Part shown: positions 17,170-45,911 of the stretch, piece by piece
Position numbering within the stretch: position 1 is the stretch's first letter
How the letters are laid out: each line of letters begins with the position of its first letter
NCBI RefSeq assembly: GCF_003918875.1
Contig: NW_025765148.1
Location: 434,001 to 498,000 of the forward strand
DNA length: 64,000 bases
Source: Haliotis rubra
Taxonomy: Eukaryota
Reading direction: 5' to 3'
The notes under the pieces: model-generated
The model's database searches: none
The model's input: only the letters and a program-made list of their open reading frames with translations
What the model was told of the DNA's origin: nothing
Program-made: the position numbers and the translations under genes

Positions 17170-20100
17170 ATGTTGAAGTTATTACTTGCAATACTTCTGT
17201 TTAAAACAGCTCAGGTAAGTATAGCTGGTCATCATACGCGACGCTATTTAACGTCGGTCTGAACAGTATAGTATATGAGTGAGTGAGTGAGTGAGTGAGT
17301 GAGTTTAGTCTTACTCCGCTTTTAGCAATATTCCAGCAATGGAACGGTGGATACCAGGAAGGGGCTTCACACATTGTACCAATTTGGGGCATCGAACCCA
17401 GGTCTTCGGTTTCAAGAGCGAACGGTTTAGACACTAACCTACTCCACGGCTTCTATAGTATATAGATGAATATAGTATATATGGTATATATAGGATCTTA
17501 AGCTTTATGTGATATAATTCATTCAGTTTCACGCAGTGCAGCCTGTTGCATTCAGAGGTAGCCAATTGTAGATTTGAAACAAAGTGGGGTAGCCTAGTGG
17601 TAAAAGCGTTCGCTCGTCCGGTTCTATTCCCCACTTGGCTACAACATGTACATCCCGTTTCTGTTATTCCTTGCTGAAATATTGCTGGCATACTGTTGAA
17701 AGCGGAGCACTTAACGCACTCAAGCAGACGCTCCAGCATATTGCCTTGATGTCCATTTTGTCGACATCAAGAACGACCTTCATGAACGATCAATCGTAAA
17801 CTAGTTGACCTCTCCTTCTTCAGTGTATCGCGTGAAGACATTGATTATATGCCCACATTTGCCTTATCTTATTAAGGGAAGGGGTGGTCTTCAATAGTCT
17901 GTTACCTTCTGTCCTCTGAAGAGGTTAACCAGACCTGAGATAGCATTGTTAACTTTACAAGTTGTTACAGAATCGACAATTTGGTCTCAGGGGTATTTAA
18001 GTACAAATGTTTCGAAACACTGTATCATGTCTCTTCCAAGTCTCAACAGGCGTTAAGAAGGTTATCTCCCCTGTTGTGGCACTCTCCAAGGCGATAATTC
18101 TGTCGAGAAGCTCTTCATAATGTCGATGCCACCAATTTCAACTCTCCACTAAGCTGGAGAGTTAGTCCGTCAACCTACTTTTGGCACCCAGTTTTTAGCG
18201 ATTAAAATTGCCTGAGTATGATTCACTTCGCCAGAGTATGTTTGTAGATTAGAACATTAGACACATCATACATGGTTTGTTTTCCAAAACAAACTATTAC
18301 CCCGTCACAGCTATCATGCAATTACAGGTTGGTGGTTCATGACCCTGTAAAAACATGGGCCCTAAAGCATACAGCTCACCTTCATCCGTCCATTACACCT
18401 ATGACCTGTCATCATAGATTCCTAATTCAACGTCAGTGTCGCCATCATCTGTATACCCGTGAAGGTCCGGGTTAGAATAGTGATCTTCAGTAACCCATGC
18501 TTGTCGTAAGCGGCGACTAACGGGATCGGGTGGTCAGGTTCGTTGACTTGGTGAACACATGTCATCGGTTCCCAATTGCGCAGATCGATGCTCATGCTGT
18601 TGTTCACTGGATTGTCTGGTCCAGACTCGATTATTTACAGACCGCCGCCATATAGCTGGAATATTGCTGAGTGCGGCGTACAACTAAACTCACTCACTCA
18701 CTCATCATCTGTATAGAGATCTATAACGACTAGTTGCACTGTATACAAATAGACGAGGCCTGCCCTGACGCCGAATACTCTGGCATGGCAAGAATGCCAA
18801 GGTCAGTTTGTCCTAAGTCTCCAACTTCCCTGAATAAATAAACTTAACTTCATCTTTAACATTGAACATGAATCGTAAACTTTCTCCCAGCTCACTGTAA
18901 TATCTTGCAGTTGCTGCAGCGACCATACCCTCCCGGGAGTCAAAAGTGGTGCTTTTCCTCCGCGGGTTGCCCGGATGATGAATGTTGTGTACACGTGACA
19001 GAACCGGATGGGCCATTCGGGAGACGAGGTGTAGCGCCACCTGGGAGGTGTTTCACTGAAACGTCGGATCTCAGAGGTAGCCAGAGTAAAATCTACGCAT
19101 AATATATAGCATTTCAAGGTTAAACGATAAGTCCTTTACACTGCATAAATATGCAAATCGAAACTTGTTCTGATGGCCTGGGACGATTGATGGACAACAC
19201 AGTTCCCTAAACTAACCCGCGGCCGATAATCGACTGACGGTTACATGATTGTGACTGGTCCTTTGGTGCACGGTAAACACCGACTTCCTTTTGAAGTTGA
19301 GCTTTCGATTTATGTGATATACTGACGCCTGGCTGACACTGTTACTTCAGGAATGTGCATGAGGTCGGCGTCTGAGAGGGCAGCGGTGCCTCACTGGTGT
19401 AACGACGGGGGCGACTGCGCCGACGACGAGTGCTGCGTTGAGTATGATCAGGGTCCAGGCTTCGGACGGAGGGAGGCCGGCCGGGATGTGTACCTCGGGG
19501 TGTGTGATAAGCTGGGACACTTCGACTCAGGTAAATCTTATAAATGGACTGAGGTAAAGTCGGACGTACTGGAGGTATATCAATGGGAATAACGAAATTC
19601 CAGGTTGGCTCCTGAATCGAAATGCATTACTGACTATTTTCACTCTCCAAGCGATTTCATATATATCTCCAATGAAATGTCATTTGTGTTAGGAAGATAC
19701 AAGGAAGTATGTTGTGTACTGTATGTTGGCGTCTTCTCTGCAGATTGTCGTATGGACCACTTCAACAGCACTAACAACGCCCGCCCCGATGGTCTAGTGA
19801 AGAGTTGCCCCTGTAACATCAAGTACAATTGCACTCTCATTGACGATTCCGACAAAACGCTGGGTGGGTATAGTCGAGTTGCAGTAATAAGAAATACCTT
19901 GGTTCTGCCTGAATTGATGCTTTAGTTAATGTCTTGGCTCATGCCTTGGTTAATGCTTGGTTAATCTCTTGATTGATGCCTTGGTTAATGGCTTGGTTGA
20001 TGCCTTGGTTAATGCTTGGTTAATGGCTTGATTGATGCCTTGGTTAATGGCTTGATTGATGCCTTGGTTAATGGCCTGATTGATGCATTGGTTAATCTTT

Positions 20101-22740
20101 TGATTGATGCCTTGGTTAATGGCTTGGTTGATGCCTTGGTTAATGCTTGGTTAATGGCTTGGCTGATGCCTTGGTTAATGCTTGGTTAATCTCTTGATTG
20201 ATGCCTTGGTTAATGGCTTGGCTGATGCCTTGGTTAATCTCTTGATTGATGCCTTGGTTAATGCTCTGCTGATGCCTTGGTTAATGCCCTGGTTAATGCT
20301 TGGTTAATGGCTTGGTTGGTTAATGCCTGATTGATGCCTTGGTTAATCTTTTGATTGATGCCTTGGTTAATGGCTTGGCTGATGCCTTGGTTAATCTCTT
20401 GATTGATGCCTTGGTTAATGGCTCGGTTGATGCCTTGGTTAATGCTTGGTTAATGGCTTAATTGATGCCTTGGTTAATGCCTGATTGATGCCTTGGTTAA
20501 TCTTTTGATTGATGCCTTGGTTAATGGCTTGGTTGATGCCTTAGTTAATGCTTGGTTAATGGCTTGATTGATGCCTTGGTTAATGCTTGGTTGATGACTT
20601 GGTTAATCTCTTGATTGATGCCTTGGTTAATGGCTTAGCTGATGCCTTGGTTAATGCTTGGTTAATCTCTTGATTGATGCCTTGGTTCATGCTTGATTGA
20701 TGCCTTGGTTAATCTCTTGATTGATGCCTTGGTTAATGCTTGGTTGATGCCTTGGTTAATCTCTTGATTGATGCCTTGGTTAATGCTTGGTTGATGCCTT
20801 GGTTAATCTTTTGATTGATGCCTTGGTTAATGGCTTGGTTGATGCCTTGGTTAATGCTTGGTTAATGGCTTGATTGATGCCTTAGTTAATGCTTGGTTGC
20901 TGCCTTGGTTAATCTCTTGATTGATGCCTTGGTTAATGGCTTGGCTGATGCCTTGGTTAATGCTTGGTTAATCTCTTGATTGATGCCTTGGTTCATGCTG
21001 CCTTGGTTAATGGCTTGGCTGATGCCTTGGTTGATGCCTTGGTTAATCTCTTGATTGATGCCTTGGTTCATGCTTGGCTGATGCCTTGGTTAATGCTTGG
21101 TTAATCTCTTGATTGATGCCTTGCTTAATGCTTGGTTGATGCCTTGGTTAATCTTTTGATTGATGCCTTGGTTAATGGCTTGATTGATGCCTTGCTTAAT
21201 GCTTGGTTGATGCATTGGTTAATCTTTTGATTGATGCCTTGGTTAATGGCTTGGTTGATGCCTTGGTTAATGCTTGGTTAATGGCTTGATTGATGCCTTG
21301 GTTAATGCTTGGTTGATGCCTTGGTTAATCTTGGTTAATCTCTTGATTGATGCCTTGGTTCATGCTTGGTTGATGCCTTGGTTAATGCTTGGTTAATGGC
21401 TTGATTGATGCCTTGGTTAATGGCTCGGTTGATGCCTTGGTTAATGCTTGGTTAATGGCTTGATTGGTGGCTTGGTTAATGGCTCGGTTGATGCCTTGGT
21501 TAATGGCTTGGCTGATGTCTTGGTTAATGGCTCGGTTGATGCCTTGGTTAATGCTTGGTTAATGGCTTGATTGATGCCTTGGTTAATGGCTTGGCTGATG
21601 TCTTGAGTAATGCCTTTTAATGCCTTCGCTGAAGCCTTGGTAAATTTCCTGGTTGCTGCCTTGGTTAATGGCTTGTCTGCTTTTTTTGGTTAATGGCTTG
21701 ATTATGACTTGACTAATGCGATGGCTGGTAGTTAGTGTGTATGTTACTTTAATAGGTAATGCTTTTGACATTCTTGTCACATTCTGCCACATCCTGCCCC
21801 ATCCTTACTGACATGTGTCAACCCTTCCTATGTGAGTAGGGGTGGTGGGGTAGCGTAGTGGTTAAAGCGTCCGCTCGTCACACCAAAGACCAGGGTTCGA
21901 TTCCCCACATGAGTACAATGTGTGAAGCCCATTTCTGGTGTCCAACCGCCGCGATATTGCTGGAATACCACTACAAGCGACGTAAAACCATACTCACTCA
22001 CTCACGCCTATCTGAGTCCTGTCTGTCATGCCCTATTTCATCCGGCAACAGTTCACCACGACCGGTCACATCTTATCAAATACTGTCTCATTCAGTCACA
22101 TCTTGGTCTGTGTCAAATTCTGACATTTTGCCATCACATACGTGCATGCACGCCCGGTCAAATCTAAATATCACAAGCTGCCCAATCTGTCACATTTCAC
22201 GTTCTGCCTAAGCTACCACACCCTAATTCATCGAAACTTGTCTGTCTTTGGCATCACTTGTGTGATCGACCCCTGCAGATACGGGTTAGAATTGATCTTC
22301 AGTAGCCCATGCTTGTTGTAAGAGGCGACTAACGGGATCGGGTGGTCAGGCTCGCTGACTTGGTTGACACATGCCATCGTATCCCAGTTGCGTGGAATGA
22401 TGCTCATGGATTGCCTGGTCTAGACTCAATTATTTACAGACCGCCTCCATATAGCTGGAATATTGCTGAGTGCGGAGTAAAACTAAACTCCCTCATGCTG
22501 TTGATCACTGGATGGTCTGGTCCAGACTCAATTATTTACAGACCGCCTCCATATAGTTGGAATATTGCTGAGTGCGGAGTAAAAATAAACTCACTCATGC
22601 TGTTGATCACTGGATTGTCTGGTCCAGACTCGATGTTTACATTACAAGTTTTACATAATATACTACCTGTGTTACGCTTTCTTCAAAGAAACCTGAGATT
22701 TTGACAGCTTGGTTGTTGCTTTCCAGGGATTTGCACCTAA
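17170..22740 (+). CDS. Gene A: secreted Cys-rich prokineticin/colipase-fold-like peptide with duplicated N-terminal module (174 aa, 16 Cys)
   Basis: Exons 17170-17214, 18911-19076, 19351-19530, 19744-19863, 22727-22740; all GT-AG, intron phases 0,1,1,1. Protein: MLKLLLAILLFKTAQ-LLQRPYPPGSQKWCFSSAGCPDDECCVHVTEPDGPFGRRGVAPPGRCFTETSDLR-GMCMRSASERAAVPHWCNDGGDCADDECCVEYDQGPGFGRREAGRDVYLGVCDKLGHFDS-DCRMDHFNSTNNARPDGLVKSCPCNIKYNCTLIDDSDKTL-GICT*. Hydrophobic N-terminus; C-x5-C-x4-CC...C-x9-C...CPC-x5-C...C spacing; AATAAA at 22780-22785. Probable 5'UTR intron 17078-17163. Confidence 0.8.
17277..17447 (-). mobile_element. SINE family A
   Basis: (gagt)n tail plus family A body; deleted plus-strand copy nearby at ~17584-17720. 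Confidence 0.85.
18456..18704 (+). mobile_element. SINE family B (~250 bp, full length, gene A intron 1)
   Basis: cccgtgaaggtccgggttagaat...acccatgcttgtcgtaagcggcgactaacgggatcgggtggtcagg...ggaatattgctgagtgcggcgt...(ctca)n; flanked by catcatctgtata duplication. Confidence 0.9.
19895..21720. repeat. Mosaic 11-13-bp simple repeat in the last intron of gene A
   Basis: Interleaved gccttggttaat / gcttggttaat / ggcttgattgat / ctcttgattgat subunits. Confidence 0.95.
21839..22004 (+). mobile_element. SINE family A
   Basis: A/B boxes, family A body, (ctca)n tail. Confidence 0.9.
22269..22634 (+). mobile_element. SINE family B with tandemly duplicated 3' half
   Basis: 3' segment ctcatgctgttgatcactgg...aaactc repeated about 2.4 times. 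Confidence 0.88.
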
Positions 22741-23286: not shown

Positions 23287-26200
23287 GCGTCAATGTCAAC
23301 CCGGAGAGGTTACATGTACAGGGCTAGATGTCAATGTCAACTCGGAGAAGTTACATGTACAGGGCTAGATGTCAATGTCAACCCGGAGAAGTTACCTGTA
23401 CAGGGCTAGGCGTCAATGTCAACCCGGAGAGGTTACATGTACAGGGCTAGGCGTCAGTATCAACCCGGAGAGGTTACCTGTACAGGGCTAGGCGTCAATG
23501 TCAACCCGGAGAGGTTACATGTACAGGGCTAGGCGTCAGTATCAACCCGGAGAGGTTACCTGTACAGGGCTAGGCGTCAATGTCAACCCGGAGAGGTTAC
23601 ATGTACAGGGCTAGGCGTCAATGTAAACCCGGAGAGGTTACCTGTACAGGGCTAGGCGTCAATGTCAACCCGGAGAGGTTACATGTACAGGGCTAGATGT
23701 CAATGTAAACTCGAAGAGGTTACATGTACAGGGCTAGGCGTCACTGTCAACCCGGAGAGGTTACATGTAAAGGGCTAGGCGTCAATGCAAACCCGGAGAG
23801 GTTACCTGTACAGGGCTAGATGTCAATGTAAACCCGGAGAGGTTACATGTACAGGGCTAGGCGTCAATGTAAACCCGGAGAGGTTACCTGTACAGGGCTA
23901 GGCGTCAATGTCAACCCGGAGAGGTTACATGTACAGGGCTAGGCGTCAATGTCAACTCGGAGAGGTTACATGTACAGGGCTAGATGTCAATGTAAACTCG
24001 GAGAGGTTACATGTACAGGGCTAGATGTCAATGTCAACCCGGAGAGGTTACATGTACAGGGCTAGGCGTCAATGTAAACCCGGAGAGGTTACATGTACAG
24101 GGCTAGATGTCAATGTCAACTCGGAGAGGTTATATGTACAGGGCTAGGCGTCAATGTCAACTCGGAGAGGTTACATGTACAGGGCTAGATGTCAATGTAA
24201 ACCCGGAGAGGTTACCTGTACAGGGCTAGATGTCAATGTAAACTCGGAGAGGTTACATGTACAGGGCTAGATGTCAATGTCAACTCGGAGAAGTTACATG
24301 TACAGGGCTAGATGTCAATGTCAACTCGGAGAGGTTACATGTACAGGGCTAGATGTCAATGTAAACACGGAGAGGTTACATGTACAGGGCTAGATGTCAA
24401 TGTCAACTCGGAGAGGTTACATGTACAGGGATAGGCGTCAATGTCAACTTGGAGAGGTAACATGTACAGGGCTAGGCGTCAATGTAAACCCGAAGAGGGT
24501 ACATGTACAGGGCTAGGCGTCAATGTAAACTCGGAGAGGTTACATGTACAGGGTTAGGCGTCAATGTCAACCCGGAGAGGTTACATGTACAGGGCTAGGC
24601 GTCAATGTCAACTCGGAGAGGTTACATGTACAGGGCTAGGCGTCAATGTCAACTCGGAGAGGTTACATGTACAGGGCTAGATGTCAATGTAAACCCGGAG
24701 AGGTTACCTGTACAGGGCTAGGCGTCAATGTCAACCCGGAGAGGTAACCTGTACAGGGCTAGGCGTCAATGTCAACCCGGAGAGGTTACATGTACAGGGC
24801 TAGGCGTCAATGTCAACTCGGAGAGGTTACATGTACAGGGCTAGATGTCAATGTAAACTCGGAGAGGTTACATGTACAGGGCTAGATGTCAATGTCAACC
24901 CGGAGAGGTTACATGTACAGGGCTAGGCGTCAATGTAAACCCGGAGAGGTTACATGTACAGGGCTAGATGTCAATGTCAACTCGGAGAGGTTACATGTAC
25001 AGGGCTAGGCGTCAATGTCAACTCGGAGAGGTTACATGTACAGGGCTAGATGTCAATGTAAACCCGGAGAGGTTACCTGTACAGGGCTAGATGTCAATGT
25101 AAACTCGGAGAGGTTACATGTACAGGGCTAGATGTCAATGTCAACTCGGAGAGGTTACATGTACAGGGCTAGGCGTCAATGTCAACTCGGAGATGTTACA
25201 TGTACAGGGCTAGATGTCAATGTCAACCCGGAGAGGTTACCTGTACAGGGCTAGGCGTCAATGTAAACCCGGAGAGGTTACATGTACAGGGCTAGATGTC
25301 AATATCAACCCGGAGAGGTTACATGTACAGGGCTAGATGTCAATGTAAACCCGGAGATGTTACCTGTACAGGGCTAGGCGTCAGTATCAACCCGGAGAGG
25401 TTACATGTACAGGGCTAGATGTCAATGTCAACCCGGAGAGGTTACATGTACAGGGCTAGATGTCAATGTCAACTCGGAGAGGTTACATGTACAGGGCTAG
25501 ATGTCAATGTCAACCCGGAGATGTTACATGTACAGGGCTAGGCGTCAATATCAACCCGGAGAGGTTACCTGTACAGGGCTAGGCGTCAATATCAACCCGG
25601 AGAGGTTACATGTACAGGGTTAGGCGTCAATGTCAACCCGGATAGGTTACATGTGCAGGGCTAGGCGTCAATATCAACCCGGAGAGGTTACATGTACAGG
25701 GCTAGGCGTCACTGTCAACCCGAAGAGGTTACCTGTACTGGGCTAGATGTCAATGTAAACCCGGAGAGGTTACCTGTACAGGGCTAGATGTCAATGTAAA
25801 CTCGGAGAGGTTACATGTACAGGGCTAGATGTCAATGTCAACTCGGAGAGGTTACATGTACAGGGCTAGGCGTCAATGTCAACTCGGAGAGGTTACATGT
25901 ACAGGGCTAGATGTCAATCTAAACCCGGAGAGGTTACATGTACAGTGCTAGGCGTCAATGTCAACCCGGAGAGGTTACATGTACAGGGCTAGGCGTCAAT
26001 GTCAACCCGGAGAGGTTACATGTACAGGGCTAGATGTCAATATCAACCCGGAGAGGTTACATGTACAGGGCTAGGCGTCAATGTCAACCCGAAGAGGTTA
26101 CATGTACAGGGCTAGGCGTCACTGTCAACCCGAAGAGGTTACCTGTACAGGGCTAGATGTCAATGTCAACCCGGAGAGGTTACATGTACAGGGCTAGATG

Positions 26201-29200
26201 TCAATGTCAACCCGAAGAGGTTACATGTACAGGGCTAGATGTCAATGTCAACCGGAGAGGTTACATGTACAGGGCTAGGCGTCAATATCAACCCGGAGAG
26301 GTTACATGTACAGGGTTAGGCGTCACTGTCAACCTGGAGAGGGTACATGTACAGGGCTAGGCGTCAATGTCAACCCGAAGAGGTTACATGTACAGGGCTA
26401 GGCGTCACTGTCAACCCGAAGAGGTTACCTGTACAGGGCTAGATGTCAATGTCAACCCGGAGAGGTTACATGTACAGGGCTAGATGTCAATGTCAACCCG
26501 GAGAGGTTACATGTACAGGGCTAGATGTCAATGTCAACCCGGAGAGGTTACCTGTACAGGGCTAGGCGTCAATGTAAACCCGGAGAGGTTACATGTACAG
26601 GGCTAGATGTCAATGTCAACTCGGAGAGGTTATATGTACAGGGCTAGGCGTCAATGTCAACTCGGAGAGGTTACATGTACAGGGCTAGATGTCAATGTAA
26701 ACCCGGAGAGGTTACCTGTACAGGGCTAGATGTCAATGTCAACTCGGAGAAGTTACATGTACAGGGCTAGATGTCAATGTCAACTCGGAGAGGTTACATG
26801 TACAGGGCTAGATGTCAATGTAAACACGGAGAGGTTACATGTACAGGGCTAGATGTCAATGTCAACTCGGAGAGGTTACATGTACAGGGATAGGCGTCAA
26901 TGTCAACTTGGAGAGGTAACATGTACAGGGCTAGGCGTCAATGTAAACCCGAAGAGGGTACATGTACAGGGCTAGGCGTCAATGTAAACTCGGAGAGGTT
27001 ACATGTACAGGGTTAGGCGTCAATGTCAACCCGGAGAGGTTACATGTACAGGGCTAGGCGTCAATGTCAACTCGGAGAGGTTACATGTACAGGGCTAGGC
27101 GTCAATGTCAACTCGGAGAGGTTACATGTACAGGGCTAGATGTCAATGTAAACCCGGAGAGGTTACCTGTACACGGCTAGGCGTCAATGTCAACCCGGAG
27201 AGGTTACCTGTACAGGGCTAGGCGTCAATGTCAACCCGGAGAGGTTACATGTACAGGGCTAGGCGTCAATGTCAACTCGGAGAGGTTACATGTACAGGGC
27301 TAGATGTCAATGTAAACTCGGAGAGGTTACATGTACAGGGCTAGATGTCAATGTCAACCCGGAGAGGTTACATGTACAGGGCTAGGCGTCAATGTAAACC
27401 CGGAGAGGTTACATGTACAGGGCTAGATGTCAATGTCAACTCGGAGAGGTTACATGTACAGGGCTAGGCGTCAATGTCAACTCGGAGAGGTTACATGTAC
27501 AGGGCTAGATGTCAATGTAAACCCGGAGAGGTTACCTGTACAGGGCTAGATGTCAATGTAAACTCGGAGAGGTTACATGTACAGGGCTAGATGTCAATGT
27601 CAACTCGGAGAGGTTACATGTACAGGGCTAGGCGTCAATGTCAACTCGGAGATGTTACATGTACAGGGCTAGATGTCAATGTCAACCCGGAGAGGTTACC
27701 TGTACAGGGCTAGGCGTCAATGTAAACCCGGAGAGGTTACATGTACAGGGCTAGATGTCAATATCAACCCGGAGAGGTTACATGTACAGGGCTAGATGTC
27801 AATGTAAACCCGGAGAGGTTACATGTACAGGGCTAGGCGTCCGTGTCAACCCGGAGATGTTACCTGTACAGGGCTAGGCGTCAGTATCAACCCGGAGAGG
27901 TTACATGTACAGGGCTAGATGTCAATGTCAACCCGGAGAGGTTACATGTACAGGGCTAGATGTCAATGTCAACTCGGAGAGGTTACATGTACAGGGCTAG
28001 ATGTCAATGTCAACCCGGAGATGTTACATGTACAGGGCTAGGCGTCAATATCAACCCGGAGAGGTTACCTGTACAGGGCTAGGCGTCAATATCAACCCGG
28101 AGAGGTTACATGTACAGGGTTAGGCGTCAATGTCAACCCGGATAGGTTACATGTGCAGGGCTAGGCGTCAATATCAACCCGGAGAGGTTACATGTACAGG
28201 GCTAGGCGTCACTGTCAACCCGAAGAGGTTACCTGTACTGGGCTAGATGTCAATGTAAACCCGGAGAGGTTACCTGTACAGGGCTAGATGTCAATGTAAA
28301 CTCGGAGAGGTTACATGTACAGGGCTAGATGTCAATGTCAACTCGGAGAGGTTACATGTACAGGGCTAGGCGTCAATGTCAACTCGGAGAGGTTACATGT
28401 ACAGGGCTAGATGTCAATGTAAACCCGGAGAGGTTACATGTACAGTGCTAGGCGTCAATGTCAACCCGGAGAGGTTACATGTACAGGGCTAGGCGTCAAT
28501 GTCAACCCGGAGAGGTTACATGTACAGGGCTAGATGTCAATATCAACCCGGAGAGGTTACATGTACAGGGCTAGGCGTCAATGTCAACCCGAAGAGGTTA
28601 CATGTACAGGGCTAGGCGTCACTGTCAACCCGGAGAGGTTACCTGTACAGGGCTAGATGTCAATGTCAACCCGGAGAGGTTACATGTACAGGGCTAGATG
28701 TCAATGTCAACCCGGAGAGGTTACATGTACAGGGCTAGATGTCAATGTCAACCGGAGAGGTTACATGTACAGGGCTAGGCGTCAATATCAACCCGGAGAC
28801 GTTACATGTACAGGGCTAGGCGTCACTGTCAACCTGGAGAGGGTACATGTACAGGGCTAGGCGTCAATGTCAACCCGAAGAGGTTACATGTACAGGGCTA
28901 GGCGTCACTGTCAACCCGAAGAGGTTACCTGTACAGGGCTAGATGTCAATGTCAACCCGGAGAGGTTACATGTACAGGGCTAGATGTCAATGTAAACCCG
29001 GAGAGGTTACCTGTACAGGGCTAGGCGTCAATGTCAACCCGGAGAGGTTACATGTACAGGGCTAGGCGTCAATGTCAACCCGAAGAGGTTACATGTACAG
29101 GACTAGGCGTCACTGTCAACCTGGAGAGGGTACATGTACAGGGCTAGGCGTCAATGTCAACCCGAAGAGTTTACATGTACAGGGCTAGGCGTCACTGTCA

Positions 29201-31471: not shown

Positions 31472-31515
<44 letters not shown>

Positions 31516-34500
31516 GCTAGTAGTGTAATGTGAGATGAGATGCAATATATAGATACCCTTATGCATTATGTACACAATAATAAAATTCTAGAACATTCTA
31601 CAGTGCTCCCCAGATGGTTCTGGAATCAGCTGCTTGTAGAAGTTTTCAGATCATTCAGTCTAAATCAAGCACATGTCTAAATATAGCATACCACTGCCAC
31701 TTACTGAATCTACAGGACAATGTACAGTAGATGAAACATTGCTGCATGACGTATAACATAGGATCATGCTACTACAACTGGTACTACTGCTGCTTCTGCC
31801 ACTACTACTACCAGGGCTACTGATACTGCTGCCTCTACCACCACTACTGCTGCCTCTGCCACTACTACTACCAGGGCTTCTGATACTCCTGCCACTACCA
31901 CCACTACTGCTGCCTCTGCCACTACTACAACCAGGGCTACTGATACTCCTGCCACTACCACCACTACTGCTGCCTCTGCCACTACTACTACCAGGGCTAC
32001 TGATACTGCTACCACTACCACCACTACTGCTGCCTCTGCCACTACTACTACCAGGGCTACTGATACTGCTGCCACTACCACCACTACTGCTGCCTCTGCC
32101 ACTACTACTACCAGGGCTTCTGATCCTGCCACTACCACCACTACTGCTGCCCCTGCCACTACTCACCACCAGGGCTACTGATACTGCCACCACCACCACC
32201 ACTACTGCTGCCCTGCCACTACTACTACCAGGGCTTCTGATACCCTGCCACTACCACCACTACTGCTGCCTCCGCCACTCACTACCACCAGGGCTTCTGA
32301 TACCGCCACCACCACCACCACCACCGCTGCTTCGCCCCACCTCCACCACTGCCGCCCCTGCCACTACCACTACCAGGGCCACTGATACTGCCACCACCAC
32401 CACCACCACTGCTGCCCCTGCCACTACCACCACCAGGGCTTCTGATACCCCCGCCACCACCACCACCACCGCCGCCCTGCCACCACTACCACCAGGGCTC
32501 TGATACTGCCACCACCACCACCACCACCGCCGCCCTACCACCACCACTGCTGCCCTGCCACTACTCACCACCAGGGCCACTGATACCTGCTACCACCACC
32601 ACCACCACTGCTGCCCCTGCCACCACTACCACCAGGGCTTCTGATACCTGCTACCACCACCACCACCACTGCCGCCTCCGCCACCACCACTACCAGGGCT
32701 TCTGATACCGCCACCACCACCACCACCACCGCTGCCCTGCCAGTACCACCACCAAGGCCACTGATACCGCCACCACCACCACCACCACTGCTGCCCTGCC
32801 ACCACTTCACCACCAGGGCCACTGATACCTGCTGCCCCCACCACCACTTCCCCTGCCGCCCCTGCCACCACTTCACTTCACCAGGGCCACCGATACCGCC
32901 ACCACCACCACCACCACTGCTGCCCTGCCACCACCACCACCAGGGCTACTGGATACCGCCGCCACCACCACCACCTCTGCTGCCCCTGCCACTCACCACT
33001 ACCAGGGCTCTGATACCCCGCCACCACCACCACCACTGCCGCCCTGCCACCACTACTCACCAGGGCTTCTGATACCGCCACCACCACCACCACCACTGCT
33101 GCCCCCACCACCACCACCGCCGCCTCTGCCACCACTCACCACCAGGGCCACCGATACCGCCACCACCACCACCACCACTACCGCTGCCCCTGCCACCACT
33201 ACTACCAGGGCTTCTGATACCCCGCCACCACCACCACTACTGCCCCGCCACCACCACTACCAGGGCTTCTGATACCGCTACCACCACCACCACCACTGCC
33301 GCCCCGCCACCACCACTCACCAGGGCTTCTGATACCGCTACCACTACCACCACTACTGCTGCCCTGCCACTCACTACTACCAGGGCTACTGATACCGCTG
33401 CCACTACCACCACCTCTGCTGCCTCTGCCACTACTACTACCAGGGCTTCTGATACTCCCTGCCACCACCACCACTACTGCTGCCCCTGCCACCACTACTA
33501 CCAGGGCTACTGATACTGCTACCACCACCACCACTACTGCCGCCTCTGCCAGTACTACTACCACATACTGATACCGCTACCACCACCACCACTACTGCCG
33601 CCTCTGCCACTACCACTACCAGGGCTACTGATACCGCTGCCCTACCACCACCACTCTGCTGCCTCTGCCACTACTACTACCAGGGCTACTGATACTGCTA
33701 CCACTTCACCACCACTACTGCTGCCTCTGCCACTACTACTACCAGGGCTACTGATACTGCTACCACTACCACCACTACTGCTGCTTCTACTACCATTTCT
33801 ACAGAACTTCACTAGAACTATTCATCCAACTGCTACTCACCACTACTACTGCTGCTACTACTACCGCTACTACTACCACTACTATTACTACTACTGCGTC
33901 TCTTGCCCTCCTCCTCCCATCATTACCACTGCTACTACTACCATTACTACTCACTACTACCATTACCACTACTATTACTACTTCCACCATTACTACTACC
34001 ACTACTACTCACTACCATTACTCACTACCACTACCACTACCTACCGCTGCTGCTGCTACTGCTGCCAAGCACGCCACCAGCACCACCACCAGGGCCACTG
34101 ATACCGCTGCCCCACCACCACCTCTGCCGCCCTGCCACTACCACCACCAGGGCTTCTGATACCGCCACCACCACCACCACCACTGCTGCCCCTGCCAGCA
34201 CTCACTCACCAGGGCTACTGATACCGCTGCCACCACCACCACTCTGCCGCCTCTGCCACTACCACCACCAGGGCTTCTTGATACCCCTGCCACCACCACC
34301 ACTACCGCTGCCTCTGCCACTACTACTACCAGGGCCACTGATACTGCTACCACTACCACCACTACTGCTGCCTCTGCCAGTACTACTACCAAGGCTACTG
34401 ATACTGCTACCACTACCACCACTACTGCTGCCTCTGCCACTACTACTACCAGGGCTACTGATACTGCTACCACTACCACCACTACTGCTGCCTCTGCCAC

Positions 34501-37500
34501 TACTACTACCAGGGCTACTGATACTGCTACCACTACCACCACTACTGCTGCCTCTGCCACTACTACTACCAGGGCTACTGATACTGCTACCACTCACCAC
34601 CACTACTGCTGCCTCTGCCACTACTACTACCAGGGCTACTGATACTGCTACCACTACCACCACTACTGCTGCTTCTACTACCATTTCTACTAGAACTTCA
34701 CTAGAACTATTCATCCAACTGCTACTACCACTACTACTGCTGCTACTACTACTGCTACTACTACCACTACTATTACTACTACTGCGTCTCTTGCTCCTCC
34801 TCCTCCNNNNNNNNNNNNNNNNNNNNNNNNNNNNNNNNNNNNNNNNNNNNNNNNNNNNNNNNNNNNNNNNNNNNNNNNNNNNNNNNNNNNNNNNNNNNNN
34901 NNNNNNNNNNNNNNNNNNNNNNNNNNNNNNNNNNNNNNNNNNNNNNNNNNNNNNNNNNNNNNNNNNNNNNNNNNNNNNNNTACTACTGCTACTACTTCAA
35001 CAACTACTGTTGGTGTTGTTACGTCTACTGCTACTACACCCATTGGTTGTGGTATAAACTACTTTGAGTCCCAAGCGTTCCAGAAGATGGTTTACACGTG
35101 AATGAGTGAGTTGTTTGGGTGATGTTTTACCTGCTTCTCCCTGTGGTTGGACGAAGGCCCCCATTCCGACACACCTGAGTCCCGCCTCACACGGGCACAT
35201 GTCGATCATCTGCATCGGCCGTGTGCCGTCAAGGCCCCTGTTCTTCACCCAGCAGCCTGCAGATAACGTCACAATAGGTCAGTGATGCAACGTTCACGGA
35301 GTTCAAGATACACTTCATGAGAGTGTAAGTTTAGTTTTACGCCGCTTTTAGCAATATTCCTGCAATATCAAGGCGGGGGACGCCAGGAATGGGCTTCATG
35401 CATTGTACCCATGTTGGAAATCGAGCCCGGATCTTCGGCGTGACGAGAGAACGCTTTAACCACGAGGTTACCACCGCCCTTTTCTTAATGAGGAGAGACG
35501 ATAGTGTAGGCTTATTGCCTCCCCGACCCAACATTCCACCTACATGTACTTTGTCCCTGTGTTCTCATGGGCCGGCGCTCCCCGAGGGCCCTCATGCCAC
35601 CCCGACCCAACATTCCACCTACTTTGTCCCTGTGTTCTCAAGGGCCGGCACTCCCCGAGGGCCCTCTTGCCACCCCGACCCAACATTCCACCTACTTTGT
35701 CCCTGTGTTCTCATGGGCCGGCACTCCTCAAGGGCCCTCTTGCCACCCCGACCCAACATTCCACCTACTTTGTCCCAGTGTTCTCATGGGCCGGCCCTCC
35801 CTGGGGGCCCTCTTGCCACCCTGACCCAACATTCCACCTACTTTGTCCCTGTGTTCTCATGGGCCGGGCACTCCCTGGGGCCCTCTTGCCACCCTGACCC
35901 AACATTCAACCTACTTTGTCCCTGTGTTCTCATGGGCCGGCACTCCCCGAGGGCCCTCTTGCCACCCCGACCCAACATTCCACCTACTTTGTCCCTGTGT
36001 TCTCTAGGGCCGGCACTCCCCGAGGGCCCTCTTGCCACCCCGACCCAACATTCCACCTACTTTGTCCCTGTGTTCTCATGGGCCGGCACTCCCTGGGGGC
36101 CCTCTTGCCACCCTGACCCAACATCCCACCTACTTTGTCCCTGTGTTCTCTAGGGCCGACCGTCCCCGAGGGCCCTCTTGCCACCCCGACCCAACATTCC
36201 ACCTACTTTGTCCCTGTGTTCTCAAGGGCCGGCACTCCCCGAGGGCCCTCTTGCCACCCCGACCTAACATTCCACCTACTTTGTCCCTGTGTTCTCATGG
36301 GCCGGCACTCCCCGAGGGCCCTCTTGCCACCCCCGACCCAACATTCCACCTACTTTGTCCCTGTGTTCTCATGGGGCCGGCACTCCCCGAGGGCCCTCTT
36401 GCCACCCCGGACCCAACATTCAACCTACTTTGTCCCTGTGTTCTCATGGGCCGGCACTCCCCGAGGGCCCTCTTGCCACCCCGACCTAACATTCCACCTA
36501 CTTTGTCCCTGTGTTCTCATGGGCCGGCACTCCCTGGGGCCCTCTTGCCACCCCGACCTAACATTCCACCTACTTTGTCCCAGTGTTCTCATGGGCCGGC
36601 ACTCCCCGAGGGCCCTCTTGCCACCCCGACCCAACATTCCACCTACTTTGTCCCAGTGTTCTCATGGGCCGGCACTCCCCGAGGGCCCCTCTTGCCACCC
36701 CCCGACCCAACATTCCACCTACTTTGTCCCTGTGTTCTCATGGGCCGGCACTCCCCGAGGGCCCTCTTGCCACCCCGACCCAACATTCCACCTACTTTGT
36801 CCCTGTGTTCTCATGGGCCGGCACTCCCCGAGGGCCCTCTTGCCACCCTGACCCAACATTCCACCTACTTTGTCCCTGTGTTCTCATGGGCCGGCACTCC
36901 CCGAGGGCCCTCTTGCCACCCCGACCCAACATTCCACCTACTTTGTCCCTGTGTTCTCATGGGCCGGCACTCCCCGAGGGCCCTCTTGCCGACCCCGACC
37001 CAACATTCCACCTACTTTGTCCCTGTGTTCTCATGGGCCGGCACTCCCCGAGGGCCCTCTTGCCACCCCGACCCAACATTCCACCTACTTTGTCCCTGTG
37101 TTCTCATGGGCCGGCACTCCCCGAGGGCCCTCTTTCCAACCTGGGGCCATGTTTTGACTTGCTGGCAGCACTTGAAGGACGGACACTCGGAGGCCACACT
37201 GCAGGACGTGGTGTTCTGGCCATACACCTGGAAACAATAAACTGGATTCGAATTTGAACTAGCAACAATTTAAGAGCTGGCCAAAGCCATTTCGTAGAAC
37301 TGTATCCACGCATCATAAAGGCACCTTTTGCGATATTCTTTTAAGCGGAATTGCTTTTAGCGGAAACCATTTTGAAAGTTTTTCTGTAGCCCCTTAGTGC
37401 AAGCTAATACGGACACAATTGTGGATTGTGTACTTCTACACAAACGAAACTCGGGTGTCTTTTTGAAAACAAATAGAGAGAATACTGAAGTTGGACAGGC

Positions 37501-38138
37501 AGCCTCCAAACTGAAGTTAGAAGCAAGTGGGTGGCAGTGTAAGCAACGTTTCACTATGCTCCTCAATATTCAGTTTACCATGTTTGAATCCCACTCGATG
37601 TCTACACGTGGAAACCTGCGCTTAGCACAACTACACTGGTTTAGTACAACCAGGTGTTTCTTATTTAATGCCGTACCTATCGAAAATCATGTCATATGCT
37701 GACGGTTGGTATACAACAGAATTTTGACCAGACCACCCGCTTATTGTCATCACGAGCATAAATCTACGTATTTGGAAATTGTTGAGGACCAGCTGGTGGC
37801 CGGATCCTAATTGTACTACCCATCTGGTCGCAACAGGAATGAGAATTACACAGTCATTTAACGCCTCAGAGGATCAAATTAAGAAGGGGCGGTGGGGTAG
37901 CCTAGTGGTTAAAGCGTTGGCTCGTCACGCCGAAGACCCGGGTTCGATTCCCCACATGGGCACAATGTGTTAAGCCCATTTCTGGTGTCCCCCGCCGTGA
38001 TATTGCTGGAATATTGCTAAAAGCGGCGTAAAACCAAGTCAGTCAGTCAGTCAAATTAAGAAAAATGCTTATGAAACATACAACAAAACTTACCAGGGCA
38101 AGACAGGCGGCAGCTATGAGAAGGAGAAAGGACTTCAT
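31321..38138 (-). CDS. Gene B: secreted 10-Cys prokineticin/colipase-fold-like peptide (108 aa)
   Basis: Exons 38138-38094, 37227-37089, 35256-35131, 31337-31321; GT-AG, phases 0,1,1. Protein: MKSFLLLIAAACLAL-VYGQNTTSCSVASECPSFKCCQQVKTWPQVGKRALGECRPMRTQGQ-SCWVKNRGLDGTRPMQMIDMCPCEAGLRCVGMGAFVQPQGEA-GNCAM*. Classic signal peptide; AATAAA on the minus strand at 31279-31274. The last intron contains an N-gap. Confidence 0.85.
31427..31519. repeat. (CTC)n(CTA)n microsatellite
   Basis: Directly visible. Confidence 0.95.
31768..35036. repeat. 60-bp CTA/CCA-derived minisatellite plus trinucleotide tracts (last intron of gene B; includes N-gap)
   Basis: Unit ctactgctgcctctgccactactactaccagggctactgatactgctaccactaccacca. 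The centre is indel-rich, and the unique block agaacttcactagaactattcatccaactg occurs twice (~33803 and ~34692). Confidence 0.9.
34807..34980. other. Assembly gap (N run)
   Basis: Run of n. Confidence 1.
35320..35479 (-). mobile_element. SINE family A
   Basis: Matches the family A consensus. Confidence 0.85.
35515..37134 (-). repeat. 73-bp minisatellite made of gene B exon-2 3' end + 5' splice site + intron start
   Basis: Minus-strand unit AAGAGGGCCCTCGGGGAGTGCCGGCCCATGAGAACACAGGGACAAA|GTAGGTGGAATGTTGGGTCGGGGTGGC, about 22 copies; the first copy is the real exon end. Confidence 0.95.
37886..38052 (+). mobile_element. tRNA-derived SINE family A (full length, gene B intron 1)
   Basis: A box TAGCCTAGTGG, B box GGTTCGATTCC, GTC (Asp-like) anticodon region, tail ggaatattgctaaaagcggcgtaaaac + tetranucleotide repeat. 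Confidence 0.9.
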
Positions 38139-39929: not shown

Positions 39930-42900
39930 CTAAACGCTGCATACACCTGTAGGAAGGAAACAGAAATGTTCAGATTATAGACTAACAGGCTGTCTGTTAT
40001 CATAGTTCAGTCAACATAGCTATAAAGGTGGACATTAACACACAACAATCCTCTACTACACAGGTTCCGGTTTACAGCAGCCGTTATTCAGCATAGCACA
40101 TTGTGCCCTGGCAGTATAGATACTCTGAAGGGCTGAGAATGTATTTTACGAGGAATCTACAATTTTAGCTGCATATGTATTGAAGTAATTTTCTATTTAA
40201 AGTGACGTGATCCACATGACCAAAGGAGCCATTACATTTACTACTGATGGCAAGCCATACCGGATATTAGTTTTCATTTGTCTAGACTCTCTGTACGTCA
40301 GGTTTGTCATCCGGCGTTTATTCCACGGTAGAACATATATTTCTACCACCTGATCGCCGTACTAACCTATTGGAGTGAGGATCGGTTACAATGTATGAAA
40401 AGTCGTTTATATGATACCACATCCGTTCATTCATCCTCCCTATGAAGGTACGTACCCGCTTCTCCCCCTGGAAGGAAGACGCCGTTGGCCACACAGTACA
40501 GCCCCCTTTGGCACGGGCAGTCGTCGGTCATGTCGTGTGGGGGAAAGTAGGCAACGTCTGTCTTTGTCCAGCAGACTTGGGAGTGAAGTACAATAGTGTC
40601 AATAAAACGGAGGTCACGGGATTGTGTGAATGGATTAGTGATTGTATAGTACAGTATTTCATAGTGTGTCAGCTTGTTGGGTGAGGAAAGGTCGAAGAGA
40701 TGCAGGTCTCAGTTTACCAGTTTCTTTAGAACTCACGGACACGGAGCTCACAAAACTAGAAACAGGCGAACCGGAAGTCGGTTTCTGTCACACCCAAGGG
40801 ACGCAACTCTGCACACCAATTGCGGCCCCCTCAGGAAACCTAAGGCCACCAGAATGGTAAGATGATGCTAGTCTGTGCTACACTGATGACTGTGGCTGGT
40901 TGTAATTTGAAGCGCTTTGAGCATGCGTGTGGGATGGACTATAGCGCTATATAAATACTCATATTATAATTTAATGTTAAGACCGTTATGAGACGCCCCC
41001 TATAATCAGCCTACAACAGGTGTTGGCACCCACGTCACTATCAGGAAATTAGCTCCATTCCTCGATCTTACGCAAACTAGGTCCAATGTTTTCACATTGC
41101 TAAATTTTAATACCATTTGTTATTTCTTGAGAAAATAGCCGGCTTACTTAAGCCTGACGCTCTGGGGGCTCGGTAACACGTCGGCAACCATTAAAGAACC
41201 ATTACACGTCAACTACAGTAACACTTTCACCCTTATACACACCCAGGCACCTACTCTCCGCAACCAACATTGTTCAACTTTGCCTGATCTGTGACCTGTG
41301 TGCAGTACTCGGACAACTTGCCACCACCTGGACTTGTAGGACTCGCCCATCCGTCACCCCGTGGTAAATACTGGCTTACAACTCAGACGTATTAGATAAT
41401 AAATTGCATTAAAACTGGCATCAGGTCAGCATACTAAGTGGCTGAATGTGGCTGATTTGTTCATCTTCAAAATGAACGTTAACGGGCAGTTCTAAATGGA
41501 ATATAAAATTACATCCTTGTGTCTTGTGTTTTGGCTATTTTGTTTGTCATCTTCGTTAAAATAAGTATCATTTAATATGATCAATCCTAAATCTTATTTT
41601 TTCCCCCTTTAACTGGTCAAGCATAAACGGAATGTAAAGTGACCAGCAGGAGCAAACCGAAACATGAGTCTCATTAACCTATTCAGGCAATGACCTACCT
41701 TCCAGCCGAAAGTGAAAATAGACATCGCAAACAACTATGGTTACACTGAATTCCAATTTCCTGTTCCATAAGAAAATAGTATTTACAACTGAATTTTTAT
41801 TTTAAATTTTATTAACATCGTATTTCTATATTTTATGGCGAGGTGTAGGCAGCATGACCTTAACTAAGACGTCACAGACTGCCCCAGTTTGATGAGGTCG
41901 TAAAATGATTCACAATGCATCTGGCTCACTGATTACACCTGTTATGTGCTTTTTGAGCTTATTCAGTGTAGTTGTGTAACAGAGTTTTTATCAAATTTGA
42001 GAAAACGCATGACAGAATAAACTGAAATCAATACTAAACTCAAAAACCTTAAGTTGTTTCTTTTTATTTAAAAATGCAGTTGAGCAGCTGTTTCAAATTG
42101 TCAAACTCAGTTTGAAATTTGAGATTTTGTTTCGAGAAATCAGGGCCGACTTTTTCCAGAGCCTCGTTTTGGATTTCCACGATTTCCAGGTTTCCGTTTG
42201 TCAGTGCTCGCTGTACGACAGAGCACGCCACATGTTTGCAAGGATTATAAGGAGCGTAGCGTTGCAATATACAAGTGCTTAGATGTATCAAATAATACCA
42301 ATTAATATTTATGTATCCAGTTAAAAGAGTTGCTCTCAAAGATTCTGGACTGGTTCTTGTACTAAGTTGCGCAATAGGACGGAACCCAGTCAACAGGAAA
42401 CGAGACTGTTGTGTAATCAATGTTTTGACTTGAGCACTTCCGGTCACTTTAACTGATATGGAGTGAGTGAGTGAGTTTAGGCTTACGCCGCTTTTAGCAA
42501 TATTCCAGCAATATCACAACGAGGGGACACCAGAAATGGGAATCTGTGAATCGAACCCGGGTTTTCAGTGTGACGAGTGAACGCTATATTCACTAAGCTA
42601 CCCCACGCCCCTAACTGATATAGGGAGGGAGGATGTAGTTTAGTCAAACTCACGCTGTCCTTGCGCCTTCATGCTCTGACAAGTACCCCTTACTGCACTC
42701 CTACTGCCGTCAACGAGGTCGTTGTTGACGTCATCGACACCACGTCCACCTATCACAACACCAGAGCTGAGCTGCTGTTGGCGGAACTGGTTGTCAACGG
42801 AATTCCCCATGGGCTTCACACAACAATATAGGAACGGACAGTCATCAGCGGTCAGACATGCCGCAGCCAGGTTCACAGAGCACTGAAGGTGAAGCAACAG

Positions 42901-45900
42901 TTATTGAGTCTTTGAATGACATGTAGAGGTGATACACGTCCAGGTGGAAATGTATAGATGCCATCTTACGTTATATGAGCAACACGACATTTAAGAGCAT
43001 GTTCTTACTCCTTCATCAGGTGAATGAAAAATAGGACCCGTCGTGTTCTTCATATTACAGACGTTGGCATCCATGAATTGTCACTTTGAACAGACTCGAT
43101 TATTCGAATATAAGACTCGGCACGACACCCCTCAACGCTAGCTTCAATCAATATTACAAGTAATTCACATCTCACAACCTTGCGGTCGTAGTGAACATTA
43201 TATACAAAATAAGAATACCTTCCGCTTGATTTTGTCGTATGATCAAAGCTAGTCTCTATTTCTGATAATTTCACAAAGTAATATGTTTAAAACTTACCGT
43301 TATGGTAACATATGGAGGGACCTTCTATATCCCTGACATAGTCCAAGAGATAAGGTCCATTTATTTACCCCGAGGGGTCCAAAAGGTTTGAACATTGGTT
43401 CCTGTAGGAAAATGTCTGCATTTTCAGAATATGTAAGTCTTACGAGTCAAAACTTGACCAAGTTTTCGCTAGAGGGCGCTGAAGTCATGACTCAGCATTT
43501 TTTTCACCCACTACTGGAAACGTATGAAATACAAAGAAAGGGTGATATATTATATATCATATGAGAGCCAACACATTTGGCTTTAATAAAATCATAACAT
43601 TAAGTACATCTTTGAACTCACTACTGTGTCAGTTCACAGAAAAGACAAAAATTACATAAAAAATGGTAAAACGCACATCTTTCGTTTTTCACTATATATA
43701 CAAATAAACCCTTGAAGAGTATTTGTGTTCTCATTTTGGATTGACAAATATATAGTCAATCATTTGAAACAACAATTATAACTTTCTATCAATTTTTAAT
43801 GGATCTACACCATGTTTTGTGAGGTAGGCATCAAATTTGAATTTCGGAAAAAGGGAGATAACTCTTGTTTCTCCCATTCTGAGATCCCACTGTTTTTTGT
43901 CCTCAACACATAGCTACGGCAACAGTTTGAGTCAACTGTACTTCTACTACTTCTACCACTTAAAGTAATAGTTGACAAACAACATTTAACACTAATAAAA
44001 ACATGTACATCGTAGGCAACCCATAATGTTGGATCAGATGTTCCAGTTAAGTAAACATTTGTTGTTTTTTGTCTTTCCAGTAAACAAAAGATTTAATACT
44101 TTCTAAATTGTTTCCTTGAAGAAATCCTTTAGTTAGTTTAGGTTCAACACATCCTGATCATAAAGAGTGAAATACCTGTAAATATTTGTCTGGTACATAT
44201 CATATTGGCGGCCATTTTTACTATTGAAACATGTGACAGGCTGATGTTGTGCTGTGATTTTGAAGCTTCTCATAGATGTTTCTGTGGTTATTATGTAAGT
44301 ATTCCTTTCCTATTTACATTACTAGATGTTCTGGAATGAAATAATGTATAAATGACAGGTAAAAAATGTAAATAAACGGATATGCTCCTGAATCAAACCT
44401 ACAATTCAAACACTGACCTTGCAAAACTTTTGGCAGCAGATACTATTTTCCTAACGAGTAATCTTATTTCTGTATTTTCTATATGTGTCTGCTGGTCAAA
44501 TGCTTTGGATTTTAATGTTGGTCTTATTCTTTCAAGTTGGTGATAAATTCTTTGCATAAATGATTTATGCTTTTTTACAACAGATCCAGTGAATGATAAT
44601 GACCTCAAAATAATATGATGGAATCCTGGATGGATTGCAGTTGGCTCTGTACAGCTGAAGGGAGGCCCGACATATGGACCACATAAGGTTTGTAAATGCC
44701 ATGTAAATCTGTCAGAAAATTAATAATCTGGATGTACCTAATGTTATGAATTTATTAAAGCCAAATGTGTTGGATCTCATATGATTTTGCAATATGTCAC
44801 CCTTTCTTTGTATTTCATACGCCAAACATCAACGTGTCCAGTAGTGGGGTAGTGGGTGAAAAAAAAGCTGAGTCATGACTTCAGCGCCCTCTAGCGAAAA
44901 ATCGGTCAAGTTTTGACTCGTAAGACTTACATATTCTGAAAATGCAGACATTTTCCCATACGTACAAATGTTCAAACCTTTTGGACCTCTGAGGTAATTA
45001 AATCAGGCCTTATCTCTTGGACTAACATATGTAGGCACTGAGCCTGTCGGACTGGACCCGAGTGAGGAAAGTGTCAGAATATGTGTATTGTTTTTTAAGG
45101 GGGGACCATATACCGTAGGCAGTCAATCAATACATTTGTTATTAAATTGGTGTGTTCACATTAGCCATCCTATAAGTCCTTGACCAGTCAGCTTGGTCCT
45201 TGACAGTGTAGCCTTTAGCAGATTTGACTAACCGAGGACCTGAACCGGCCCAATATGAAACCTTCCCTAATGTAAGATAAGAGAATTACTCGTCCTACAT
45301 TTACAGAATTTGACATTTAATCCAGCCAACGGCGTACAAACAAGGTCAACGTTTGTCTGAAGACTTTCGTCGTCGCAGACACTAGTGATTTCGTTCGTTG
45401 ACAGTGCTTCCTTGTTGTTAAGTTCAGCAATCATCCATTACACGACGGCGAGGCTGAACCAGGCAATAAATGGAGGGATCATGAGGCCCGATATACACAA
45501 GTAGGATACGATGACGTGCAACAAACAAGATAACGAGCCTGACCATCGATCCTTTTATAAAGGAGGCCGCCCTTCTGGTGGAAACATACATGCATCTCGC
45601 TATAATCTCACTACTTTCAAAATGTATAGGCGGATGAGATATAAAGCCACGTTAAGTCGGTGCGCCTAGTGGCTGAAAGAGTTGTATGAGATCCCCATGG
45701 AGCTGAGGAGCTGAGATTGATAATACGATGTGCCGTTTGAGTTTGACATCCAATGGTCGAGGGAAAAATTTAAGCGCCTTTGTGGAGCTGATCTGTATAT
45801 TGGCGCTATACAAATGTTAGTATAATAAGTAGTAATAGATATACAATCACAATGTCTCTGTATGCTACTTACTACAAGCCCCACGAGTGCTACACGCGAC

Positions 45901-45911
45901 ACTGTCTTCAT
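39930..45911 (-). CDS. Gene C: secreted 10-Cys prokineticin/colipase-fold-like peptide with long C4-C5 loop (134 aa)
   Basis: Exons 45911-45873, 42882-42654, 40575-40456, 39946-39930; phases 0,1,1. Protein: MKTVSRVALVGLV-CSVNLAAACLTADDCPFLYCCVKPMGNSVDNQFRQQQLSSGVVIGGRGVDDVNNDLVDGSRSAVRGTCQSMKAQGQ-LCWTKTDVAYFPPHDMTDDCPCQRGLYCVANGVFLPGGEA-GVCSV*. Same exon structure and ACCAGC-ATGAAG start context as gene B. Exon 3 uses an AAG acceptor. Confidence 0.82.
40895..40970 (+). mobile_element. L2/CR1-type retroposon 3' tail
   Basis: tgtaatttgaagcgctttgagcatg...gcgctatataaatactcatattataa. Confidence 0.45.
41638..42448. mobile_element. Kolobok-like non-autonomous element (gene C intron 2)
   Basis: agtgaccagcagg... 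/ ...cttccggtcact ends with GTAA/TTAA flanks. Confidence 0.45.
42461..42611 (-). mobile_element. SINE family A
   Basis: Matches consensus; flanked by direct repeat taactgatat. Confidence 0.85.
43339..45024. mobile_element. Long-TIR non-autonomous DNA transposon, Academ-like (gene C intron 1)
   Basis: ~260-bp TIRs (43339-~43600 vs ~44740-45024), TAG...CTA termini, 3-bp duplication ACA. Confidence 0.75.

Follow-up and report, generated by a model that had tools for sequence, protein, structure and literature searches.

A conserved cluster of four genes for secreted peptides of the predicted prokineticin type in the abalone Haliotis rubra

The segment of the genome of the blacklip abalone, Haliotis rubra, considered here (contig NW_025765148.1, positions 434,001 to 498,000 of the forward strand), hereafter the window, comprises 64,000 nucleotides and harbours four spliced genes for small cysteine-rich proteins, which we designate A to D and which lie in the order D(-), A(+), B(-), C(-). 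Counted from the first letter of the window, gene D extends from 6289 to 2833 on the minus strand, and its spliced model is identical to XP_046556838.1 (P0008), a protein of 106 amino acids named 'U9-ctenitoxin-Pr1a-like'; gene A (17170-22740, plus strand) corresponds to XP_046556839.1 (P0123; 174 amino acids; 'uncharacterized' at NCBI), gene B (38138-31321, minus strand) to XP_046556863.1 (P0120; 108 amino acids; 'venom protein 164-like') and gene C (45911-39930, minus strand) to XP_046556864.1 (P0001; 134 amino acids; also 'uncharacterized'). An earlier note, drawn from the DNA letters alone, had reported A, B and C as a cluster of three genes hidden from annotation. These three are real, being identical to RefSeq proteins, but the cluster numbers four, and all four were already RefSeq proteins; that none appeared intact in the list of open reading frames was correctly observed, since spliced genes are invisible to a bacterial-style list of this kind. 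It is highly probable, in our view, that D-A-B-C is a conserved tandem cluster of four old paralogues belonging to the lophotrochozoan prokineticin-domain (astakine-like) family, cytokine-like in nature and subject to purifying selection.

The gene models were derived by direct reading of the DNA together with anchored exon boundaries. In a six-frame regular-expression scan the motif C-x5-C-x4-CC occurs five times in the window, solely in predicted exons, and each match is accompanied by a C..CPC-x5-C stretch 0.2-2 kb downstream on the same strand. All four genes satisfy the ten-cysteine spacing C-x5-C-x4-CC ... C-x9-C ... CPC-x5-C ... C, in which the C5-x9-C6 interval is kept in every copy and is equal in the alignments of Bv8 and MIT1, such that the likeness to prokineticin and MIT1 spacing originally pointed out is borne out. 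Every intron is bounded by GT..AG, the phases being 0,1,1 in B, C and D as against 0,1,1,1 in A; the proposed common plan of four exons thus fits B and C, and also D, but fails for gene A with its two C1-C5 exons. The short terminal exons were described accurately for A, B and C: the signal-peptide exon, of 13-15 codons and phase 0, measures 45, 45 and 39 nt (30 nt in D), and the last coding exon, which carries Cys10, measures 14, 17 and 17 nt (20 nt in D), with G-x-C preceding the stop codon in all four. A strict scan recovered the last exon of gene C only, the others being obtained from a relaxed scan and from the C-termini of orthologues.

Gene B begins with 15 signal-peptide codons (38094-38138, minus strand, phase 0, identical to XP_046556863.1), continues with exon 2 (37089-37227, C1-C5), whose 3' end, together with the donor, serves as the first unit in a 73-bp satellite, and with exon 3 (35131-35256, C6-C9), and ends in a last coding exon of 17 nt (31321-31337) reading G-N-C-A-M-stop, the same GNCAM with which the H. 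asinina orthologue (P0004) ends. Gene C, on the same strand, comprises 13 signal-peptide codons (45873-45911, phase 0, identical to XP_046556864.1), an exon 2 (42654-42882) that completes the signal peptide and then encodes C1-C5 with a C4-C5 loop of 46 residues, an exon 3 (40456-40575, C6-C9) and a 17-nt last exon (39930-39946, G-V-C-S-V-stop); used as a protein query, the open stretch around its exon 2 retrieved a 134-amino-acid H. rubra protein identical to the spliced model. The exons of gene D, which lay outside the earlier finding, are at 6289-6260, 5100-4950, 4621-4502 and 2852-2833 on the minus strand. Elsewhere in the H. rubra genome there is a two-domain member, LOC124290128, and, on contig C2097 at 803164-803421, a further member whose whole ten-cysteine domain is contained in one exon, from which it follows that the family does not keep to the 0,1,1 intron plan throughout.

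Gene A departs from its neighbours in carrying an additional half-domain. Its first exon (17170-17214, plus strand) contains the start codon and 15 signal-peptide codons, is identical to the start of XP_046556839.1 and ends in a phase-0 donor, GTAAGT. It is followed by exon 2a (18911-19076), a first C1-C5 half-domain of the form C-x5-C-x4-CC-loop-C ending in phase 1; by exon 2b (19351-19530, phase 1 to 1), with an extra cysteine and a second C1-C5 half-domain; by exon 3 (19744-19863, phase 1 to 1), spanning C6 to CPC-x5-C (C6-C9); and by a last coding exon of 14 nt (22727-22740), G-I-C-T-stop, with the last cysteine. The resulting protein of 174 amino acids has 16 cysteines, and its C-terminus is identical in four Haliotis proteins. 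The two half-domain exons resemble each other (E 3e-7, BLASTP), and exon 2a matches the family profile described below (probability 94%, E 1.4e-7, hhalign). RNA evidence of the kind that the earlier note asked for covers three exons of this gene: in run X6, a 560-nt RNA contig of depth 374 equals 18911-19074 + 19349-19527 + 19741-19864 with GT..AG joints, thereby joining exons 2a, 2b and 3, and the joint 19527>19741 is present in run X1 as well; X3 and X4 show genomic DNA in collinear order at this gene. The alternatives that 2a and 2b are mutually exclusive or belong to two genes were ruled out by this contig and by the presence of both exons in the 174-amino-acid models of four species, H. 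rufescens, H. asinina, H. cracherodii and H. rubra. Moreover, exon 2b is entered in phase 1 and therefore cannot follow the phase-0 signal exon. No ten-cysteine form lacking 2b was seen in the RNA contigs, which drop rare variants.

The family to which these proteins belong was delineated by a profile built from the window exons and three orthologues, which was searched against 1.84 billion proteins and matched 101 representative proteins at E<=1e-3. Among them are 'Prokineticin domain-containing' proteins of Magallana gigas, Lottia, Lymnaea, Pinctada and unionid mussels, a 'prokineticin Bm8-f-like' protein of Ostrea, 'venom protein 164-like' proteins of Pomacea, Crassostrea virginica and Aplysia, a 'U19-ctenitoxin-like' protein of Littorina, and unnamed proteins of the annelid Owenia. 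Canonical cysteine spacing is found in 50 of the 58 aligned relatives. Against the sequences of the PDB, the check by profile that had been called for yielded Bv8 (E 1e-7), MIT1 (E 6.6e-7), U33-theraphotoxin (2n8k, E 8.9e-6), Dkk1 (E 1e-4) and colipase (E 2.7e-4), in that order; the gene C protein by itself had no match to PDB sequences (phmmer), the family profile alone reaching Bv8 and MIT1. When 55 single-domain relatives were compared with Pfam, 16 matched the prokineticin model PF06607, seven MIT_LIKE_ACTX (PF17556) and six Colipase_C. Gene D of the window reaches the gathering score of PF06607 (23.7 bits, E 6.1e-5, cut-off 21.6). The absence of the N-terminal AVITGA, asserted for A, B and C, extends to D, and AVITG is likewise missing from the 58 aligned relatives; Cys1 follows QNTTS in B, for instance, and VPTG in D.

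Structural models lead in the same direction. The AlphaFold model of the gene B protein, with a mean predicted local distance difference test score (pLDDT) of 82.7, retrieved MIT1 first in a Foldseek search of the PDB, and 10 of the top 11 hits are colipase-fold chains, all except draxin, which ranks eighth; by VIA-align it superposes on MIT1 with Z 8.1 over 76 of 80 MIT1 residues. For the gene A protein (pLDDT 71.6), residues 85-174 superpose on MIT1 with Z 7.7 and a root-mean-square deviation of 1.9 A, while the best structural match of its N-terminal half-domain alone (Z 2.1) is not meaningful. MIT1 is thus the best match in both cases, and the prokineticin/colipase-fold interpretation with which the analysis began is upheld by the profile, by the models of A and B and by the Pfam score of D. 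A hydrophobic N-terminal leader is modelled as a helix over residues 3-16. Each of A to D encodes a signal peptide and, after it, a ten-cysteine domain that is predicted to take the colipase/MIT1 fold and that by analogy with MIT1 is probably locked by five disulfides.

What such proteins might do is suggested by their relatives. Almost every lophotrochozoan phylum has prokineticin-like peptides (PMC6425005), and protostomes have no known orthologue of the prokineticin receptor (PMC8398477). In crayfish, shrimp and oyster, the formation of haemocytes is promoted by astakines, and their receptor is thought, in crayfish and oyster, not to be a prokineticin receptor but, for example, the ATP-synthase beta subunit (PMC8398477, PMC9756803). 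Because A to D lack AVITGA and no protostome prokineticin receptor is known, their function is most likely, by analogy, that of astakine-like secreted cytokines. The proteins would be secreted, each with its ten-cysteine prokineticin-type domain devoid of AVITGA; they would act as cytokine-like ligands in the manner of astakines; and their receptor would be of a type other than the G-protein-coupled receptors (GPCRs), such as the ATP-synthase beta subunit at the cell surface.

Several observations weigh against this assignment and should be taken together. The proteins of A, B and C remain below the PF06607 gathering score of 21.6 bits, the best score beneath the cut-off being 13.7 bits, for the H. 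asinina orthologue of C, and Prokineticin giving E 0.079 where single proteins were compared, so that their membership rests on the profile and the fold. The Foldseek E-values are weak (2e-3 at best) and Z-scores near 8 are moderate; weak E-values are usual for small disulfide-rich domains. Among the four genes, RNA evidence covers A only; the whole of gene C (6 kb), used as a query, brought up no RNA runs. Finally, the oyster relatives are reportedly expressed mainly in the digestive gland, where all five prokineticin-like transcripts are reported (PMC8398477); this suits a digestive or some other role at least as well as that of a haematopoietic cytokine.

This last observation also speaks for the best-surviving alternative, namely that the peptides are not cytokines but serve a digestive, lipid-interface or antimicrobial role, like colipase-fold proteins and MIT-like venom peptides, and issue from digestive or mucus glands. 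Colipase chains are indeed among the best structural matches, and the peptides encoded by exon 3 of B and of C match Colipase_C below threshold (E 0.02), other single-exon Pfam searches being uninformative. Yet neither Colipase nor Colipase_C reaches its gathering score (Colipase_C 13.9-15.7 bits against 23.7, E 0.02-0.06), the family profile matches Bv8 and MIT1 about 1000-fold better than colipase, and the sole molluscan member with a reported functional test, oyster astakine, is described as acting on haemocyte production (Li et al. 2016, as cited in PMC8398477 and PMC9756803). We therefore regard a non-cytokine role as unlikely.

An astakine-like family of old paralogues can be contrasted with the picture first drawn of this locus, that of a lineage-specific, fast-diversifying and unannotated family like those for toxins, immune peptides or pheromones. 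That picture has some foundation, for the paralogues share just ~20-40% identity outside the cysteines, gene C evolves fastest, with indels in its long loop, and two members, B and D, are named by NCBI after prokineticin-like arachnid venom peptides. However, the orthologues tell otherwise. In H. asinina the cluster again reads D(-), A(+), B(-), C(-) and keeps its exon plan, exon sizes and phases being identical in A and B and exon 2 of C being 3 nt longer. Pairwise dN/dS (the ratio of nonsynonymous to synonymous substitution rates, by the Nei-Gojobori method) between abalone orthologues ranges from 0.07 to 0.24: for H. rubra and H. asinina it is 0.13 in gene A, 0.07 in gene B and 0.24 in gene C, and for gene C of H. 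rubra and H. cracherodii it is 0.19. The epithet 'diversifying' is not supported by these values; nor is 'lineage-specific' supported, as the 101 representative clusters extend across molluscs and to the annelid Owenia, with A-type orthologues in Lottia and D-type ones in four gastropod genera. In a maximum-likelihood tree, gene A groups with Lottia (support 100/97), gene D with proteins of the heterobranch and neomphaline snails Physella, Lymnaea, Elysia and Gigantopelta (support 99/98), and B and C form a sister pair close to a protein of Gigantopelta; given the small number of columns and the abundance of long branches in the tree, only these A, D and B/C groupings are used. The divergence of the paralogues is a matter of ancient duplication and not of fast recent evolution, their orthologues being under purifying selection, and with all four genes annotated besides, we judge the picture of a young toxin-type family very unlikely. 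Barely credible, lastly, are Dickkopf-like Wnt antagonists, whose colipase-fold domain binds LRP5/6: the C-terminal domains of Dkk1 and Dkk2 do match (Z 6.8-7.0, E 1e-4), but prokineticin-type chains outscore them, the N-terminal cysteine-rich domain of Dickkopf is absent (no Dickkopf_N match in Pfam in any of the window's proteins), each protein having only its signal peptide and a single domain of the prokineticin type, or one and a half such domains in A, and true two-domain Dkk orthologues are described separately in molluscs (PMC6425005).

Within the preferred framework of an old astakine-like cluster, two structural peculiarities merit comment. The first is the extra half-domain of gene A, whose architecture, including the extra cysteine that opens the second half, recurs in a 171-amino-acid protein of Lottia gigantea. 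The additional cysteine would putatively pair with the third cysteine of the first half-domain, which is otherwise an orphan; the duplicated C1-C5 half-domain may thus be tethered by a new cysteine and kept under purifying selection. The second is a G-K/R-K/R motif in the C4-C5 loop, which lies at 37120-37128 on the minus strand in gene B; of 50 canonical relatives, 33 possess the motif and 43 have a dibasic pair of some kind. The stretch that follows the motif is the length-variable part, of 9-46 residues. In gene C of H. rubra the dibasic pair has been lost, while the H. asinina and H. cracherodii orthologues keep it. Judging from the motif, it could be a putative convertase site yielding a two-chain, disulfide-linked ligand. 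That gene A is an old 'one-and-a-half domain' variant of the prokineticin fold reaching from Lottia to Haliotis, or else that the loop motif is a convertase site, is a tentative and on balance doubtful proposition; if true, the half-domain variant or the loop cleavage would constitute a structural or processing mode undescribed for prokineticins or astakines.

The remaining features of the locus concern its repeats, its gaps and its neighbours. The third intron of gene B, which leads from exon 3 to the last exon, contains a non-coding run of N (34807-34980); a TAC/TGC-rich repeat is found on both flanks of this run, it adjoins a 30/60-bp GC-rich satellite (31783-34683, also in intron 3), and no coding frame spans it. 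The H. asinina orthologue of B has the same exon order, the same GNCAM end and a gap-free intron 3 of 382 bp with (AGTAGT)18 at the matching place, which indirectly supports the view that gene B is probably continuous across the gap. A second gap (5978-6165) falls in intron 1 of gene D. Satellites of kilobase scale had been ascribed to the introns of the cluster; genes A, B and D do contain them, whereas C is free of them. In gene A, a 12/59-bp satellite (19913-21675) occupies the last intron, and the corresponding position in H. asinina holds a related 12/24-bp array; intron 2 of gene B contains the 73-bp satellite (35515-37138), which starts inside exon 2, such that exon 2 and intron 2 together contain the end of that exon and its GTAGGT donor 21 times, as compared with 2.6 copies of the array at the same place in H. 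asinina (L016, 10378-10563); and intron 3 of gene D contains a 17-bp satellite (3603-4364). Between genes, there are 152 copies of a 41-bp unit (23287-29515, between A and B) and ~100 copies of a 43-bp unit (6552-11019), a large intergenic array between cluster genes. Since arrays occupy matching places in H. asinina, they are older than the split of the species and have expanded in H. rubra.

Intron 1 of gene A also houses very high-copy interspersed repeats (17291-17484, 17582-17678 and 18455-18745), at which the contig depth of genomic runs spikes to millions and many rearranged joints appear; they look like short interspersed nuclear elements (SINEs) and recur in other introns of the cluster. 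As to flanking genes, the C-B pair of H. cracherodii adjoins an NWD1-like gene, and the gene upstream of C in both H. asinina and H. cracherodii encodes a NACHT/WD40 (NWD1-like) protein of 1643 amino acids, a neighbour that is expected in the H. rubra window also, beyond 46000.

We found no abalone-specific study of these genes in the literature. They are ordinary members of a known family. The family itself has been published, as have the absence of AVITGA from it and the occurrence of several copies in molluscs; gene A with its one and a half domains and the dibasic motif conserved in the loop are minor curiosities. The earlier note had conceded that its novelty would fall should the genes prove one-to-one orthologues of molluscan prokineticin-like peptides already characterised; such peptides have been described (PMC6425005, PMC8398477), and the novelty is in spirit, if not to the letter, forfeited. 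What the analysis provides is of modest practical value: it ties the 'uncharacterized' RefSeq proteins of A and C to the prokineticin/astakine-like family and presents four such genes as a conserved cluster, with no new class of molecule. It also makes A to D candidate haemocyte growth factors for abalone aquaculture and immunology.

The closest known systems are molluscan. The Cragi-prokineticins 1-5 and CgAstakine of Crassostrea gigas, together with the peptides of De Oliveira et al. 2019, have the same combination of signal peptide and ten-cysteine domain without AVITGA, and molluscan genomes, like that of the abalone, contain several paralogues of such prokineticin-domain proteins. The oyster 'Prokineticin domain-containing' proteins are direct matches of the window profile, the likeness being one at the level of the family; relative to molluscan prokineticins, gene A of the abalone has an extra half-domain and gene C an insertion that brings its loop to 46 residues. 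Crustacean astakines, which are likened here by their published description, also possess a secreted prokineticin domain without AVIT and are presumed to signal without the prokineticin GPCR (PMC8398477, PMC9756803); a haematopoietic role and binding to ATP-synthase beta, as reported in crayfish and oyster, would be candidate properties of the abalone proteins. With the AVIT family, comprising the prokineticins of vertebrates, the frog peptide Bv8 and the mamba toxin MIT1, which are the best structural matches, the abalone proteins share the cysteine framework, including C5-x9-C6 and CPC-x5-C, but they differ in lacking AVITGA, in that one gene of the four passes PF06607, and in their longer C4-C5 loop with G-K/R-K/R and longer C9-C10 tail. 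The MIT-like venom peptides of arachnids (venom protein 164, U-ctenitoxins, U33-theraphotoxin-Cg1b/c and MIT-like atracotoxins) are the source of the names given to B and D, and theraphotoxin 2n8k matches the abalone family in both profile and fold; there is no sign of use as venom or toxin in abalone, and this likeness is one of a shared fold family and not of a shared role.

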